Notes under the pieces: generated by a model | Told to the model about the DNA's origin: nothing | Databases searched by the model: none | What the model saw: the letters and a program-made list of their open reading frames with translations, nothing else | Program-made: the position numbers and the translations under genes | In this document: one piece after another, positions 6,656 through 38,034 of the stretch | How positions within the stretch are numbered: the stretch's first letter is position 1 | Layout: each line of letters begins with the position of its first letter | Sequence record: OP310983.1 | Direction: 5' to 3' (one strand) | Length of the DNA: 64,000 nucleotides

Positions 6656-8899
6656 ATGAGCGTACATGCCCTAAGAGAACTGTTTAAACACAAAGGCGAA
6701 AAGAATTACGAAGTCTTCTCAATGGAAGATTTCATTGGCCGCCTAGAAAGTGAAATTGGTCTAAATGACAGCGTTGTTAGTCAAGGTCGTTCCCTTATTA
6801 GCAGCATTTCACATGAAAACTTCGGTACCGTGCAAGCTACCGACATTCAAGATGCCGCTGCAATTTATAACAAAATGCAAATGCTCGTTAACGACTATGG
6901 TTTCGAACGAGTAAGTTCCAGTGATCCTCAAGTACGTGCTCGTGAAGAACGTGTCCGTGAGAACCAAATCACTGCTGCTACCATGGCTGCTATCGCCTGT
7001 GCTGATGAAACTAAATATATCCGTGCACTACGTGGTATTACCAAAGCTAAAGCTTCTAATGAAGATCATGTTAAGGTTGTACAGCATCAGTTCAATGGCC
7101 CTGCTGGTGGCATTCAAGTATTCGAAAATGGTGTTGGCCTAGAGAACTATAACGAGAAGTCACAGCGTGATTTCCGTGTTGTAACTATTGGTTATAACCT
7201 AGCTGCTAGCCGTCAGGATGAATTCGCTGAGCGTATCTATCCGACCACCGTTATCAACCCGATTGAAGGTGGTGTTGTTCAGGTTCTTCCTTACATCGCT
7301 GTAATGAAAGACGTTTACCACGAAGTATCCGGCGTTAAGATGGATAACGAAGAAGTGAACATGGTAGAAGCCTATCGTGATCCTTCCATCCTCGACGACG
7401 AAAGCATTGCACTAATTCCTGCCCTAGATCCGGCTGGTTCCAATGCTGACTTCTTCGTAGACCCGGCTCTTGTTCCTCCGTACACCATCAAGAACGAGCA
7501 GAACCTAACTATCACTACTGCTCCGCTAAAAGCGAACGTACGTCTTGATCTAATGGGTAACTCCAATGCTAACCTACTCATCCAGCGTGGCATGCTTGAA
7601 GTTTCTGACACCATTGATCCGGCTGGTCGTCTAAAGAACCTATTCGTTCTACTCGGTGGTAAAGTTGTTAAGTTCAAGGTTGACCGTCTACCTCGCGCTG
7701 TGTTCCAGCCCGATCTAGTTGGTGATACCCGGAACGCTGTTATCCGTTTCGATAGCGACGATCTAGTTGTTAGTGGCGATACCACTTTCATCGATGGTTC
7801 AGCTGACGGTGTTATCAATGATCTTAAGACCGCTAAACTAAGCCTACGTCTAAGCGTTGGTTTTGGTGGTACAATCAGCCTATCCAAAGGCGATTCTAAG
7901 TTTGGTGCTACCGACACTTACGTCGATAAAGTTCTAAACGAAGATGGTCAGGTAATGGATAATGCTGACCCGGCTGTTAAAGCTATTCTAGATCAGCTAA
8001 CTGACCTAGCGGTTATCGGTTTCGAACTAGACACTCGCTTCACCAACACTAACCGTCGTCAGCGTGGTCACCTACTACAGACCCGTGCGCTACAGTTCCG
8101 TCATCCGATCCCGATGCACGCTCCTGTAACTCTACCGATGGACACCATGACCGATGAAGGTCCGGGTGAGGTTGTTAAAGCTCTAACTGTTAACACCAAC
8201 ATCCGTAACAGCAACAACGCTGTTAAGCGCATGCTTAACTACCTTGCTCAACTACGTGAAGTTGTACACAATGGTTACAACCGTCCGAAGTTTGGTATCA
8301 TCGAAGGTGCACTATCCGCTGTAATGCGTCCGACCTATCGTTACAAAGAACTAGATCTTGAGAAAGTCATCGACACCATCAAGTCTAAAGATCGTTGGGA
8401 CGACGTTTGCGCTGCGATCCTAAACTGTGTTAAAGCTGAGCTATTCCCGGCTCACCGTGATTCCAACATTGAAGCTGCCTTCCGTGTTATCTCCGGTAAC
8501 CAGGATGAAACTCCGATGTATCTCTTCTGCTCCGACAAAGAGATTGCTAACTATCTAATGACTAAAGGTGACGACCGTACTCTAGGTGCTTATCTCAAGT
8601 ACGATATCGTTTCCACCAACAACCAGCTATTTGATGGTAAGCTAGTTGTAATTCCGACCCGCGCAGTACAACAAGAAAACGACATCCTCTCCTGGGGCCA
8701 GTTCTTCTACGTATCTACTGTTATCGCTGACCTACCGATCACTCGTGGTGGTCACCAGGTTACTCGCGAAATCGCGGCCATTCCGTTCAACCTACACGTC
8801 AACAACATTCCGTTCGCGCTAGAGTTCAAGATCACTGGCTTCCAGAAAGTCATGGGCGAAACTCAGTTCAACGGTAAGCTTGCTGATCTTAAGCCGTGA
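6656..8899 (+). CDS. gp120: major capsid protein (747 aa), propeptide removed at ...GVGLE|NYNEK
   Basis: Length and sequence recognised as phiKZ gp120; strongly biased codon usage; S/A/G-x-E protease sites in N-terminal part. Confidence 0.95.
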   Translation: MSVHALRELFKHKGEKNYEVFSMEDFIGRLESEIGLNDSVVSQGRSLISSISHENFGTVQATDIQDAAAIYNKMQMLVNDYGFERVSSSDPQVRAREERVRENQITAATMAAIACADETKYIRALRGITKAKASNEDHVKVVQHQFNGPAGGIQVFENGVGLENYNEKSQRDFRVVTIGYNLAASRQDEFAERIYPTTVINPIEGGVVQVLPYIAVMKDVYHEVSGVKMDNEEVNMVEAYRDPSILDDESIALIPALDPAGSNADFFVDPALVPPYTIKNEQNLTITTAPLKANVRLDLMGNSNANLLIQRGMLEVSDTIDPAGRLKNLFVLLGGKVVKFKVDRLPRAVFQPDLVGDTRNAVIRFDSDDLVVSGDTTFIDGSADGVINDLKTAKLSLRLSVGFGGTISLSKGDSKFGATDTYVDKVLNEDGQVMDNADPAVKAILDQLTDLAVIGFELDTRFTNTNRRQRGHLLQTRALQFRHPIPMHAPVTLPMDTMTDEGPGEVVKALTVNTNIRNSNNAVKRMLNYLAQLREVVHNGYNRPKFGIIEGALSAVMRPTYRYKELDLEKVIDTIKSKDRWDDVCAAILNCVKAELFPAHRDSNIEAAFRVISGNQDETPMYLFCSDKEIANYLMTKGDDRTLGAYLKYDIVSTNNQLFDGKLVVIPTRAVQQENDILSWGQFFYVSTVIADLPITRGGHQVTREIAAIPFNLHVNNIPFALEFKITGFQKVMGETQFNGKLADLKP

Positions 8900-8980
8900 G
8901 CTGGAAAGGGTTACCGTTATCTAGAAAATGGGACTATCCGTTATTTGGAAGACGGTAATGCCCGGAAGTTAGAAGAGTAA
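8900..8980 (+). other. in-frame 26-codon extension after capsid UGA (candidate readthrough tail)
   Basis: AGKGYRYLENGTIRYLEDGNARKLEE*; same frame as gp120; no own start or SD; terminator only after the TAA. Confidence 0.7.
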
Positions 8981-8984
8981 CAGA

Positions 8985-9015
8985 CATAGGCCCTCCCTTC
9001 GGGGAGGGCTTTATG
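8985..9015 (+). terminator. intrinsic terminator after capsid extension
   Basis: CATAG-GCCCTCCC-ttcg-GGGAGGGC-TTTATG. Confidence 0.85.
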
Positions 9016-9020
9016 TTGTA

Positions 9021-15206: not shown

Positions 15207-15650
15207 TTAACTGCTTTCAAATTCAAGAGTTACTGGTATTGTTGGTATCCACGACAAGTTATTAAAGTATGGATGTATCGTAACCGTATTCCCAGTAATA
15301 GGTTGCGGTTGTATCTCATCTATAATAAATGGAATACCGTAAACATCTCTTAATTTTTCAGCTACTTCTAAATTATCAGTATAGTCAGTTGGTTTACCCG
15401 GTACTTTTATACCAAGACAGTACTCTGGTAAAGAGCGTCTATTAAAGTAAATAACTGTCTCACCTTTAAAATAAAGTGAACTGGTCTTCGCTCTCATTGT
15501 TGTTTTGGCATTTGTACCAGTTGCTAAGAATGTATCAGTCCCTATAAATTCAACATCATCAACAGTTAAATCCCTAGGCTTACCATTATTATCTTTAGGT
15601 TTATTAGCCACATTCCAAGCAGCTACTAATTCAGCTCTTGTATCAGCCAT
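15207..15650 (-). CDS. virion structural protein, YxRL-family paralogue (gp126)
   Basis: VIYFNRRSL motif similar to gp127/gp143/gp158; in structural operon. Confidence 0.65.
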   Translation of the reverse strand: MADTRAELVAAWNVANKPKDNNGKPRDLTVDDVEFIGTDTFLATGTNAKTTMRAKTSSLYFKGETVIYFNRRSLPEYCLGIKVPGKPTDYTDNLEVAEKLRDVYGIPFIIDEIQPQPITGNTVTIHPYFNNLSWIPTIPVTLEFESS

Positions 15651-15658
15651 TACACACC

Positions 15659-16534
<876 letters not shown>

Positions 16535-33382: not shown

Positions 33383-33629
33383 TTTACTTCTCCCTTGCGA
33401 TGTGGAAGCCCCACCTACAGCTAATGAGATCATCAATGCATTAGATAGATATAAAGCTGTTGGGGTTACTGATGAGAATGAAGCACGTTTCTTACTTATG
33501 ACCGAACATTGGCTTTTACAAACTGATGCACTTGGACTATGTAATATCCAAGTAGACAAATTGCGTGAATGGAACGAACGTCAACGTAATTTGGAGAATA
33601 GTCATGACCCTAGAGGACGTTCTGATTGA
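33267..33629 (+). CDS. outer-membrane spanin lipoprotein (Rz1-like)
   Basis: Start ATG 33267: MKLTQKKITLISLLMLLLNG|C lipobox, Pro-rich PPPVKIP, SLLLPC, helical C-terminus; alternate frame inside the i-spanin 3' end. Confidence 0.8.
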   Translation: MKLTQKKITLISLLMLLLNGCTSTTVPPPVKIPVAIPSSLLLPCDVEAPPTANEIINALDRYKAVGVTDENEARFLLMTEHWLLQTDALGLCNIQVDKLREWNERQRNLENSHDPRGRSD

Positions 33630-33999
33630 GATCGATGGTAATCCTTTATCTTCTTCTAAAGACTATGGAAAGAAGATACGTACCTATTTGAATAGTGTAT
33701 TGGAAAAGGAACAACGTATAAATCTAAGTATAACTGGTGAGGAAGTACTTAGTCTAATTTATGCTATTACCGATTCAGATCTTCAATATAAAATTCTCAG
33801 CCGGGAAATTGCTGAAGTGAAGGCTAAAGATTCTTACCGTAATGCGGTATTGGTATTAGCTGGTGGCGTTACTCTTATTGGGGCATCAGTATCTACTATG
33901 GTAGTTTTATCTGGTGCACCTATGTCAGAAGAAAGTGCCAATGTGTTAAAGACTATTGTGCAAGGTACCTTTGAATTAATAAAGATGCTTATGCAATAA
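33604..33999 (+). CDS. membrane protein, candidate holin-like (gp142)
   Basis: Track ORF 33565; likely start MTLEDV after GGAG; hydrophobic AVLVLAGGVTLIGASVSTMVVLSG; lies in the lysis cassette. Confidence 0.45.
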   Translation: MTLEDVLIEIDGNPLSSSKDYGKKIRTYLNSVLEKEQRINLSITGEEVLSLIYAITDSDLQYKILSREIAEVKAKDSYRNAVLVLAGGVTLIGASVSTMVVLSGAPMSEESANVLKTIVQGTFELIKMLMQ

Positions 34000-34081: not shown

Positions 34082-34615
34082 ATGCAGGATATCTTTCCGT
34101 ATGACATGGCATCGAGGAATGCGCTAGTAAAACTTGCGCGGGATGATTTAAAAATAAACTTCAAACCAGAAACAGTTACATTTGAAGATATGTTTTTTAG
34201 TCCAACCACGATTGAGCCTGGACGTACATTTATTGAAATGATCGACATCACTACTGACATTAAGTACATGTTAACTTACCGTCGGTTAGATTTTGCTGAT
34301 CCACGTGCTATTGGTGAAGGATCTATCCTTAAGATAGTTGGTACTTTAACACCTAAAGCAATTGCTGAAGAAATTAACCGTTCACGAGGTTGGAAGCTTG
34401 GTCCAGATGATGTTTCATTTGATACAACACCAATCAATGCAACTACGGATGTTGTTCCATACACGATAGTAGCTATGTCGAGTAGCTATGCTTACTATGG
34501 TGAATGTAATATACTAATCCAACGTATTGATGATACGTCAGATACTATCCGACTATTAGAGAATGGTGCAGCACGTTATCTAGAAAATGGTCAAATCCGT
34601 TATCTAGAAAGTTAA
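34082..34615 (+). CDS. virion-type protein with YxRLD motif and C-terminal RxLENG repeats (gp143)
   Basis: LTYRRLDF; ends RLLENGAARYLENGQIRYLES. Confidence 0.75.
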   Translation: MQDIFPYDMASRNALVKLARDDLKINFKPETVTFEDMFFSPTTIEPGRTFIEMIDITTDIKYMLTYRRLDFADPRAIGEGSILKIVGTLTPKAIAEEINRSRGWKLGPDDVSFDTTPINATTDVVPYTIVAMSSSYAYYGECNILIQRIDDTSDTIRLLENGAARYLENGQIRYLES

Positions 34616-34637: not shown

Positions 34638-35459
<822 letters not shown>

Positions 35460-35664: not shown

Positions 35665-38034
35665 ATGGCAAATGCTACAGACAAAGGCAAGATCAGTCAA
35701 CTGCCGGATCTAGCTACTCTTAACGATAGCGAGTATATTGAATTAATTCATACCGATGCAGCTGGTCAAGTCGATAACTATAAGTTTCTGCTGTCAAAAC
35801 TACAGACTGGAGCACCCGGTCTTAGTGCGTACGAGATTGCCGTTAAAAATGGTTTCCAGGGAACTGAAACCGAATGGCTTGATTCGCTTAAAGGTAAATC
35901 TTCTTATCAAATCGCAGTCGATCTAGGTTTCGTTGGTACTGAAGAAGAGTTTATAGCATCCCTTAAAGGTGATGCTGGTAAGAGTGCATATGAAGTAGCT
36001 GTGGAAAACGGTTTCCAAGGTACTGAACAGGAATGGTTAACATCACTGCATGCAACCATGACTGCTGAACTACTCCAGTCGCTCTTAAATCAACAAGGTT
36101 ACACAGTTAAAGATGTACTGCGTGTAACTGGCAAGAATGGTGGATTATCATCCAACGCTGCTTTCCATAACTTTGCTTTCCTGTTTGATAAGCGTCTAAA
36201 TCAAGACGACTTAACTGCTGGTGATAAAATACCTCAGCGTATGATGGAACAAGGTCGTATGGAAGCAGAAGGTTATTCTTATCTAAAGAACGCTTCTGCG
36301 CCCACTACGCAAGGTGCATTACCCGAATTACCTGAGTCTGAAATTCGTATTTATGACAATGGTGAATTCCAGATTGGTAGTTTAACTGATTACATTGCAT
36401 TCAAGAATGACGGTAATATCCGTATTGTTGAAGGCGTTGATGAAACGACCGTTGATCTTAAGAACCTTCCTAAAAATGAAGGTATTAGTGGCGGTGTATT
36501 CGTCAAAGATGTACAAGCAACTGATCCCAGTCAGAACGTAGGTAGTATTGTGCGTACCCCTGATGGACACAGCGTACAGTCATGCCTATCGACCACTAGT
36601 AATGTTCGGGTTATCGTTGATGCAATAACTGGACATTCTAGTTATGTACCTAGTGTTAAAATCAATAACGTAGATGCAGTTGTAACTCCTGGCGTTAATC
36701 CACCCATGTGGATTGCTACCGCCGATATTGATCTTGGTGCACCTACTACTGAAGGTTATGCTGATATTGTTGTAGAACACGCCGATGGGGCTAAATTCAC
36801 TACTAAGGTATTAGCCGATACTCCCGCTAATATTACCAGTGCTGTATTTACTGGCGGTTATCCGTTAGGTCAAACAGAACTTAAAGAAGATGACCTTGTT
36901 GCAATTAAAGTTGTTACTGATGAAAATATAGTAGCATACGAAATTGCTGACTTTGGTGCACTGAAAGAAAGTAGTGGCACTGTTGCACCTACTAAAGAAC
37001 TAGAGGTTACTGGTCTTTACGTAGCTGATCGTGGTAATACTACTAAGGCATATGGTTTCCGTGTACGTGTTCAGAAATCAACTGGGTCATGGTCAGAATG
37101 GTTTACTTCCAGTGATGCTGGTTCCGAAGATAAAATTAACACCATGCAGTTAAACGATCTTCGCCCAGTTGTTAATATTGGTCAAGTAACTTATCCGTCT
37201 GGTCAAAGTGCTATTAAAGTAGGTGAAACTGCTACTGTAGCCAATACAGTATCTAATGCTGATAGTGTGGTTTATTCCTCACCAAATGATCAGCTCACTA
37301 TAACCAGTGCAAATGAAGCAGAAATTGCTAAGGTAGTTACTTATAAGTCTGGTACTTATAACGACAGCACTAATAACCTATTAATTACTGCTAAACGTGC
37401 AGCTAATGGTAGTGTAGCTACGGCTACTGCTGTTGTAGCTATTGCAAATGCGGTACCTACTGCGACGGTTACCTACCCTGCTGCTCGCCTTCGTTCAGGT
37501 GGTAACTTTGGAACCCAAGTACAAAGTCATGTCATTACTTTAACCTCTACTCAGAAACTAAGTGCAGCTCCGGCCATGAATGCGCCTGGCGGTAAGTGGG
37601 CTACTGAGGATTGGAAATCTGATGCCACTGGTAAGGTATGGACACGTGCATTACTAGTACATGACGATGATCCTAAAGGAACCTACGATTTTAACAGTGT
37701 GGTTCTAAAAGGTTTAGCTGGTGTTGAAGCTAATAGTGTAAATGGTGGTACTTACGTACTAGGTGGATTTGTATTCCGCACTCTAAGTGTGGCTGCTTGG
37801 CCGAACCGTGAAACTGATATTGGTACTGAAGTAACCAATACTGGTAAACTACGTTGCAGTAACCTATCTAAAGGTTCTACTGGTAGCTTAAACTTCACTT
37901 ATAAGGCGGACGATGCAAATCAAGTTGACACCTACACCATCAAGGATGGCAATAAGTGGTATAACTGTGACTCAGCAAATGCTGTATCCAACACCACTGG
38001 ACTGATGAAAATCGAACTTGAGGAAGTAGTATAA
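35665..38034 (+). CDS. fibre-like structural protein (gp145)
   Basis: KISQLP N-terminus; three SAY(E/Q)IAVxxGFxGTExEWLxSL repeats; Ig-like beta-rich C-terminal domains. Confidence 0.75.
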   Translation: MANATDKGKISQLPDLATLNDSEYIELIHTDAAGQVDNYKFLLSKLQTGAPGLSAYEIAVKNGFQGTETEWLDSLKGKSSYQIAVDLGFVGTEEEFIASLKGDAGKSAYEVAVENGFQGTEQEWLTSLHATMTAELLQSLLNQQGYTVKDVLRVTGKNGGLSSNAAFHNFAFLFDKRLNQDDLTAGDKIPQRMMEQGRMEAEGYSYLKNASAPTTQGALPELPESEIRIYDNGEFQIGSLTDYIAFKNDGNIRIVEGVDETTVDLKNLPKNEGISGGVFVKDVQATDPSQNVGSIVRTPDGHSVQSCLSTTSNVRVIVDAITGHSSYVPSVKINNVDAVVTPGVNPPMWIATADIDLGAPTTEGYADIVVEHADGAKFTTKVLADTPANITSAVFTGGYPLGQTELKEDDLVAIKVVTDENIVAYEIADFGALKESSGTVAPTKELEVTGLYVADRGNTTKAYGFRVRVQKSTGSWSEWFTSSDAGSEDKINTMQLNDLRPVVNIGQVTYPSGQSAIKVGETATVANTVSNADSVVYSSPNDQLTITSANEAEIAKVVTYKSGTYNDSTNNLLITAKRAANGSVATATAVVAIANAVPTATVTYPAARLRSGGNFGTQVQSHVITLTSTQKLSAAPAMNAPGGKWATEDWKSDATGKVWTRALLVHDDDPKGTYDFNSVVLKGLAGVEANSVNGGTYVLGGFVFRTLSVAAWPNRETDIGTEVTNTGKLRCSNLSKGSTGSLNFTYKADDANQVDTYTIKDGNKWYNCDSANAVSNTTGLMKIELEEVV

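Follow-up and report, generated by a model that had tools for sequence, protein, structure and literature searches.

A leaky UGA at the end of a coat gene allows a minority of subunits to carry an exposed, in-frame C-terminal extension which is used for interaction, as is the case for A1 of Q-beta and for the coat readthrough domain of the luteovirids. Programmed frameshifting has the comparable outcome of a minor decorated form, and is known from T7 gp10B and from the Ig-like domains found on capsid and tail proteins. phiKZ and Goslar are model nucleus-forming jumbo phages whose virions have only just been solved, and thousands of DUF7941 copies per virion are still unplaced in them. The Goslar virion is reported to contain ~2,140 copies of gp23 and 580 of gp22, with AlphaFold docking the Goslar linker head-to-tail on the N-terminal domain in the next protomer; filaments of gp22 have been seen by EM, a fibre cloud anchored at the baseplate has been proposed, and a gp126-gp127 dimer has been placed at the outer baseplate (10.64898/2026.04.21.720040).

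Two competing roles can be found in the literature for gp143 of phiKZ. It has been described as a holin-binding lysis regulator which shifts the time of holin triggering, the predicted contact with the holin N-terminus being made through its first globular domain and not its tail (PMC12894885), and orf143 was found to be dispensable in a TnSeq preprint. It is also annotated as a virion structural protein, and it is not named among the modelled proteins of the phiKZ structure papers (PMC11297242, PMC13250141). For the major capsid protein, gp120, the C-terminal arm makes up the central six-helix bundle of a hexamer and, in a pentamer, touches the outer protein gp244 (PMC11297242), and the capsid product is given as 747 aa both in PDB 8y6v and in proteomic annotations. 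We found no published account of capsid readthrough in jumbo phages or of a peptide tag shared between gp143 and the capsid gene, a literature search on DUF7941 brought up no further accounts either, and neither the tail motif nor the capsid extension described below is mentioned in the Goslar preprint, PMC12894885 or the TnSeq preprint.

Results

The locus and its genes

The DNA studied here, referred to throughout as the window, is a 64-kb stretch of OP310983.1. Its origin is Pseudomonas phage phiKZ or an almost identical isolate (99.9-100% identity), and its counterpart in NC_004629 lies at about nt 111.6-175.6 kb; the features of the window are collected in Table 1. The offset to NC_004629 is 111612 at gp120 and 111611 at gp143, and this change of 1 nt between window positions 8899 and 33000 points to a single-base indel relative to that record. 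The gene order of the lysis cassette was confirmed as gp141-141.1-142-143-144. Beyond the cassette, gp145 (35665-38034) is called a 'tail sheath' by RefSeq and phrog_15433, its other family matches being to tail-fibre and collagen-like proteins, and the 'tail sheath' label looks doubtful. A TTATG(T/C)CGT-like motif (9008-9020), conserved across genera in most loci, abuts the terminator hairpin 3' of the capsid gene and may be the promoter of the gene downstream.

Table 1. Features of the window, with positions counted from its first nucleotide
Feature	Position	Strand	Remarks
gp120, major capsid protein gene	6656-8899	+	Stop TGA 8897-8899; PhiKZ_MCP Pfam match, E 5e-228; RefSeq
In-frame extension after the TGA	8900-8980	+	26 codons + TAA; AGKGY, then 2.6 R-x-L-E-x-G repeats
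Tag core of the capsid extension	8915-8977	+	R-x-L-E-x-G repeats in the gp120 frame
17-nt stretch identical to 34574-34590	8915-8931	+	Exact match within the window
Terminator-like hairpin	8988-9011	+	3' of the stop of the extension, not directly 3' of the capsid TGA
gp126	15207-15650	-	Tag-free DUF7941 paralogue; candidate N-terminal domain for binding the tag
gp127	15659-16531	-	DUF7941 paralogue without the tag; baseplate periphery
gp142, holin	33565-33999	+	Lysis cassette around gp143 (PMC12894885)
gp143	34082-34615	+	Short DUF7941-family virion protein; phrog_2935 and a weak DUF7941 match
C-terminal tag of gp143	34550-34612	+	8-residue repeats at 34550-34573, 34574-34597 and 34598-34612
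gp144, endolysin	34677-35459	+	Lysis cassette around gp143

A terminal peptide shared by gp143 and the capsid gene

gp143 ends in TI-RLLENGAA-RYLENGQI-RYLES, and the stretch that follows the TGA of gp120 translates as AGKGY-RYLENGTI-RYLEDGNA-RKLEE before it meets a stop of its own. Both tags are made of three 8-residue units, the last of which is cut after R-x-L-E, and both sit at the extreme C-terminus. A six-frame scan of the 64-kb window revealed no R.LE.G repeats at other sites, and no copies of the tag were found on gp126 or gp127. Searches for precedent returned chance matches only from the PDB and noise only from the literature when the peptide string was used as the query.

The initial annotation had drawn attention to this shared tag and to a 17-nt identity within it, and both were confirmed. 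The sequence CGTTATCTAGAAAATGG has two exact copies in the window, the first of them in the gp120 frame five codons past the TGA stop, and a pair of matches was not seen in any of 100 shuffles. All five RYLEN codons of the 17-mer are those preferred by phiKZ, and two RYLEN stretches written independently would share their five codons with a probability of ~0.02-0.06; several repeat registers could have matched. The identity can thus be attributed largely to identical residues being written in the preferred codons of phiKZ. It adds little by itself, and it is the repeat architecture at the peptide level that is the non-random part. Duplication or gene conversion at the DNA level was considered as the main cause of the 17-nt identity and rejected, given that preferred codons and identical residues suffice, and that within phiKZ-clade genomes the tag of gp143 and that of the capsid gene do not follow one another. 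The third repeat of gp143 is RYLES in phiKZ as opposed to RELEH in most close relatives, which brings the phiKZ tail unusually near to the version found in the capsid extension.

gp143 is a DUF7941 protein with a conserved tail

A search of 5.8 billion proteins returned 47 homologues of gp143, 45 of which are full-length. Every one of these 45, down to 33% identity, ends in the tag, with 0-4 residues separating it from the stop. R157, E160, R165, E168 and R173 are invariant in an alignment of 44 sequences and are among only 15 invariant columns.

DUF7941 (PF25613) is matched by 38 of 44 family members (best E 4e-12), with Goslar gp23, FLC9 gp72 and SPN3US gp183 being clear members; gp143 itself scores 18.3 bits, below the 27-bit cut-off. 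Comparison of gp127 with the gp143 family by hhalign gave an E of 0.0017. Whilst gp143 has no sequence match among the solved chains of the PDB, the AF2 model of the protein (pLDDT 89.9) has a sole significant Foldseek match in 9xqd_0, a chain of 150 residues in the phiKZ outer baseplate (E 7e-7, TM 0.59/0.69) which is presumably gp127. gp143 is a DUF7941 protein that shares the N-terminal fold of this baseplate protein. It had been cast earlier as an adaptor; it is not a neutral adaptor, being a member of a family that is reported to form filaments (10.64898/2026.04.21.720040).

In the model, the tail of gp143 (residues 151-177) has a pLDDT of 74-85 and contains periodic beta-bridges that flank each Arg. 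This is compatible with the beta-hairpin repeats previously proposed for the motif, without proving them. The appended tag (21-26 residues) contains no recognisable folded domain and no Pfam or PHROG model covers it.

The extension is conserved as a peptide across the phiKZ clade

Capsid genes of the phiKZ clade were gathered from Pseudomonas phages of six other genera (Phabio, PS119XW, Psa21, 201phi2-1, PhiPA3 and PA1C) together with 18 IMG/VR loci, Noxifer and Viktualia, giving 20 distinct sequences. All 20 show the same succession of TGA, in-frame tag of 26-30 codons, stop and hairpin, and the pattern holds at only ~70% DNA identity. Taken with the 45 of 45 gp143 tails, this supports the earlier idea of a modular C-terminal motif common to gp143 and the capsid extension; loss of the motif from homologous gp143 or capsid tails had been named as a test of that idea, and the motif is kept throughout both sets.

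Among the 20 sequences, R8, E11, G13 and G22 of the extension are invariant. The invariant Arg residues are encoded by both CGN and AGR, the Glu and Gly residues by all of their synonymous codons, and pairwise differences at codon positions 1-3 amount to 0.42, 0.38 and 0.52, the third position being the most variable. Conservation is not below that of the last 20 capsid codons. No conserved RNA structure was found after the capsid TGA by RNAalifold (-2.9 kcal/mol), and the 3' A/G context alone is common. The use of synonymous codons, the variable third position and the lack of a conserved RNA fold together argue for selection on the peptide in the capsid frame. Since the phiKZ extension has no usable in-frame start, its sole start-like codon being a TTG inside repeat 2, readthrough of the stop codon would be the simplest account of that selection. 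A conserved RNA structure of a SECIS-like or readthrough-stimulating kind was looked for 3' of the UGA and not found, and there are no tRNA genes within the 64-kb window which might serve as a candidate suppressor.

We also asked how the two tags relate within a genome. Across 11 phiKZ-clade genomes, a capsid extension shows no greater similarity to the gp143 tail of the phage that carries it than to the tails of other phages, so the sharing exists at the level of the tag class only.

Stop codon and tag class in the wider Chimalliviridae

Eighty chimallivirus capsid loci were collected, representing 74 distinct gene ends. TAA closes 44 of these and TGA 30, with none ending in TAG; among long ORFs of the window, TGA closes just ~19%. 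The tag extension is present after 29 of the 30 TGA ends compared with none of the 44 TAA ends (Fisher 1e-19, not corrected for phylogeny). It runs for 15-30 codons in the tagged ends, whereas TAA is followed by 0-20 unconserved in-frame codons (52 in one case) without a tag. The base 3' of the capsid TGA is A in 24 and G in 6, and mostly T after TAA.

Beyond the phiKZ clade the tags belong to a "DGF" class, found in Goslar, in RP12-like and FLC9-like phages and in two metagenomic lineages. The DGF tag is covered by the DUF7941 Pfam model, in the linker for which docking on the following protomer is predicted. Sequences of this second post-TGA class (D/G/N/S-G-F, then Y/P/G) were noted at loci L032, L034, L035, L126-L132, L138, L141 and L158. 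Each extension was compared by Smith-Waterman with every ORF found in 26-64 kb of its own genome, using 200 shuffles for reference. For phiKZ, Goslar and RP12 the best match was the extreme C-terminus of the phage's own short DUF7941 protein: gp143 in phiKZ by way of the R-x-L-E-x-G repeats, gp23 in Goslar through DNVADGF[IV].P (0/200 shuffles reaching the score in each) and ORF070 in RP12 through IGN....GFNE[FY].A (1/200). In FLC9 the extension resembles the tail of gp72 by eye only and the match is not significant. Goslar gp23 adjoins the endolysin, as gp143 does in phiKZ, and the Goslar extension shows likeness to the linker of gp34 too.

There are exceptions to this pattern. The capsid gene of SPN3US ends in TAA TAA without an extension, and yet gp183 of that phage keeps its DGF tail; RAY has TAA and no extension, and RSF1 also ends in TAA. 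SURPRISE13 has a TGA followed by seven codons without the tag, and in one metagenomic locus (L151) the TGA leads into an open frame of 97 codons that lacks the motif. The recoded capsid subunit put forward in the initial annotation draws strong comparative support as a prediction, from the conserved TGA, the in-frame conservation at the protein level and the matching of tag classes in other genera.

Related tags in other phages

A degenerate scan of IMG/VR for RLLEDG-type tags yielded 81 loci, and a few copies are also found in bacterial genomes. The tag is C-terminal in major tail tube proteins (Phage_tail_2), in large tail proteins (phrog_1101) and in unknowns of 45-680 residues, and N-terminal in some fibre-like proteins. 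No common receptor gene was found near the tagged genes of non-jumbo contigs, where BLAST clusters reflected lineage groups only. The occurrence of these tags in phages without DUF7941 indicates that the DUF7941 domain is not a universal receptor.

Several individual loci may be recorded here. RLLEDGxxRLLEDGxxRLLE ends diverse proteins in the non-jumbo viral contigs L042-L121 (for instance L060:3378-3869, L070:9135-11180 and L061:960-2168), including a PASTA/baseplate-like protein, and here too the tag has no model in Pfam or PHROG. An N-terminal tag is carried by tail-assembly-like and Ala/Gly/Ser-rich fibre-like proteins at L077:4053-4745 (-), L083:8543-9859 (+) and L209:2297-3613, the last of these lying in the bacterial genome of Blastomonas natatoria and being likely part of a prophage. 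At L104:4100-4202 the tag frame has no start and overlaps, in another frame, the end of a J-like tail-fibre fragment (upstream ORF L104:3726-4130), making this a candidate for a tag appended by frameshifting. Small tag ORFs of ~45-80 codons (L045, L046, L092 and L096) start at an ATGA that overlaps the stop of a ~130-residue ORF, which is conserved and of unknown function. The PHROG identity of genes upstream of the small tagged ORFs was uninformative except for the one J-like fragment.

Discussion

The comparative data suggest a programmed UGA readthrough of the capsid gene, and we infer from them both the translation of the extension and its binding to a partner. On balance, we think it probable that the threefold R-x-L-E-x-G peptide is a linker/tail module of the gp143 family, and that a readthrough copy on the capsid, behind a leaky UGA, anchors or seeds DUF7941 chains on the head. 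The module would belong to the C-termini of gp143-family short DUF7941 virion proteins, with the capsid gene holding a further copy in frame behind its conserved and putatively leaky UGA. Occasional readthrough would then place a 26-residue C-terminal extension on a minority of the ~1,600 capsid subunits, so that a readthrough rate of 1-5% might be expected to give tens of tagged subunits per head. These may display the module outward from the centre of the capsomer, which is made plausible by the location of the gp120 C-terminal arm at the centres of hexamers and its contact with gp244 in pentamers. Because the extension copies a DUF7941 linker/tail, the N-terminal domain of a DUF7941 protein, either gp143 or gp126/gp127, could dock there and start a chain. 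If this is the case, then gp143/DUF7941 chains would be anchored or seeded on the head by the tagged subunits, besides the sites already known at the baseplate. Anchoring on the head in this manner is consistent with the absence of gp143 and gp23 from symmetric reconstructions.

The identity of the partner deserves careful consideration. It was suggested previously that the nearby fibre gp145 might bind the tag. We found no support for this, since no test linked the N-terminus of gp145 to the tag, and the DUF7941 N-terminal domain is the better candidate in view of the reported formation of head-to-tail filaments by this family via the linker/tail. The possibility that the extension is read through and displayed for some other common partner, be it a host surface component or a virion protein such as the collagen-like fibres gp145 and gp146, is one that we regard as unlikely, though it deserves to be taken seriously. 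In the host case the tag would act as a weak adhesin, similar to the Ig-like decoration domains. The RLLEDG-type tags that end tail proteins and start fibre-like ones in many non-jumbo contigs without DUF7941 fit such a partner, as does the failure to find a shared receptor gene family near these genes, and the lack of fine-scale co-variation between extension and tail is what a conserved external ligand would produce. Set against this, the capsid extension and the DUF7941 tail switch tag class together between genera, and the DGF tag lies within the DUF7941 model, at the linker where docking is predicted.

It is rather improbable, in our estimation, that the tags bind each other, with the beta-meanders of gp143 and the extended capsid protein co-assembling through intermolecular beta-structure. 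The AF2 model does place periodic beta-bridges in the tail at moderate confidence, and other phages carry tags at the N- and C-termini of different virion proteins. Self-association of this kind fits less well with the finding of one tagged gene only in most ~10-kb loci of other phages, or with a PA7 contig, near-identical to phiKZ, that has just two strict-pattern sites, and a structural precedent was not found in the PDB. Given that RLLEDG-type tags extend beyond the chimalliviruses and that no common receptor gene was found near them there, a partner outside DUF7941 and self-assembly of the tag both stay live as rivals to docking on DUF7941.

We consider it very unlikely that gp143 is mainly a cytoplasmic lysis regulator whose tag is used in that function, with the capsid copy titrating gp143 or its partner in such a way that accumulation of heads is coupled to the timing of lysis. 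The position of gp143 between holin and endolysin, its non-essential nature, and the effect on holin triggering together with the predicted binding to the holin N-terminus (PMC12894885) would all accord with this. However, the predicted holin contact is made by the first globular domain and not by the tail (PMC12894885), the corresponding protein of Goslar is very abundant in the virion, and gp143 carries the annotation of a structural one. We give hardly any credence to the extension being untranslated, whether as a relic or as a nucleic-acid element with which the capsid mRNA ends, for although it sits between stop and terminator, its amino acids are conserved in frame with synonymous codons and codon-family switches, its frame always closes within a few codons of the third repeat, its association with TGA is strict, it matches a protein tail in three tag classes, and no conserved RNA fold was found.

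Returning to the anchoring of DUF7941 chains on the head, a broader version of it can be offered tentatively, and we consider it more doubtful than probable. In the chimalliviruses and, by way of RLLEDG-type tags, in many unrelated tailed phages, short terminal peptides of this type might act as a portable plug that selects the virion protein on which accessory filaments are carried. In several jumbo-phage lineages, conserved programmed UGA readthrough would put the plug on the major capsid protein, such that the head itself, and not the baseplate alone, nucleates the DUF7941 fibre cloud. Since the holin is tuned by gp143 as well, head assembly and the timing of lysis could be linked through this one tag.

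Were these proposals to be borne out, capsid recoding would add a protein species for which no structure or proteome has yet been searched, and the unplaced DUF7941 filaments would gain a concrete anchoring site. It would also be the first example, among those we could find, of a large dsDNA phage whose capsid gene undergoes conserved readthrough of its stop codon, and the RLLEDG repeats would represent a widespread and previously undescribed terminal peptide module on phage tail and head proteins.

Placed beside the systems already described, this locus shares some features with each. The work on holin regulators concerns the same gene, gp143, whose position in the lysis cassette we confirm; it does not include the C-terminal repeats, which are the most conserved part of the gp143 family, or an association with the virion (PMC12894885). 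The DUF7941 'fibre cloud', comprising gp22 and gp23 in Goslar and gp126, gp127 and gp143 in phiKZ, counts gp143 as a member, and the tag corresponds to its proposed docking linker/tail; in that preprint the filaments are anchored at the baseplate only, and neither the conserved tail motif nor the stop-hidden copy in the capsid gene is mentioned (10.64898/2026.04.21.720040). With T7 gp10B and the Ig-like domains, phiKZ would have in common that a major structural gene is recoded at its 3' end, but this would take place through readthrough of an in-frame stop and not by a frameshift, and it would add no Ig or other Pfam domain. The closest likeness in gene layout is to Q-beta A1 and the luteovirids, in that the phiKZ coat gene also ends in a UGA with an in-frame extension behind it which may be expressed. 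phiKZ differs from these in that it is a jumbo phage with dsDNA and has a T=27 capsid of the HK97 fold, and the jumbo-phage extension is not a domain: at 15-30 residues, it is a copy of the tail peptide of another family of virion proteins.
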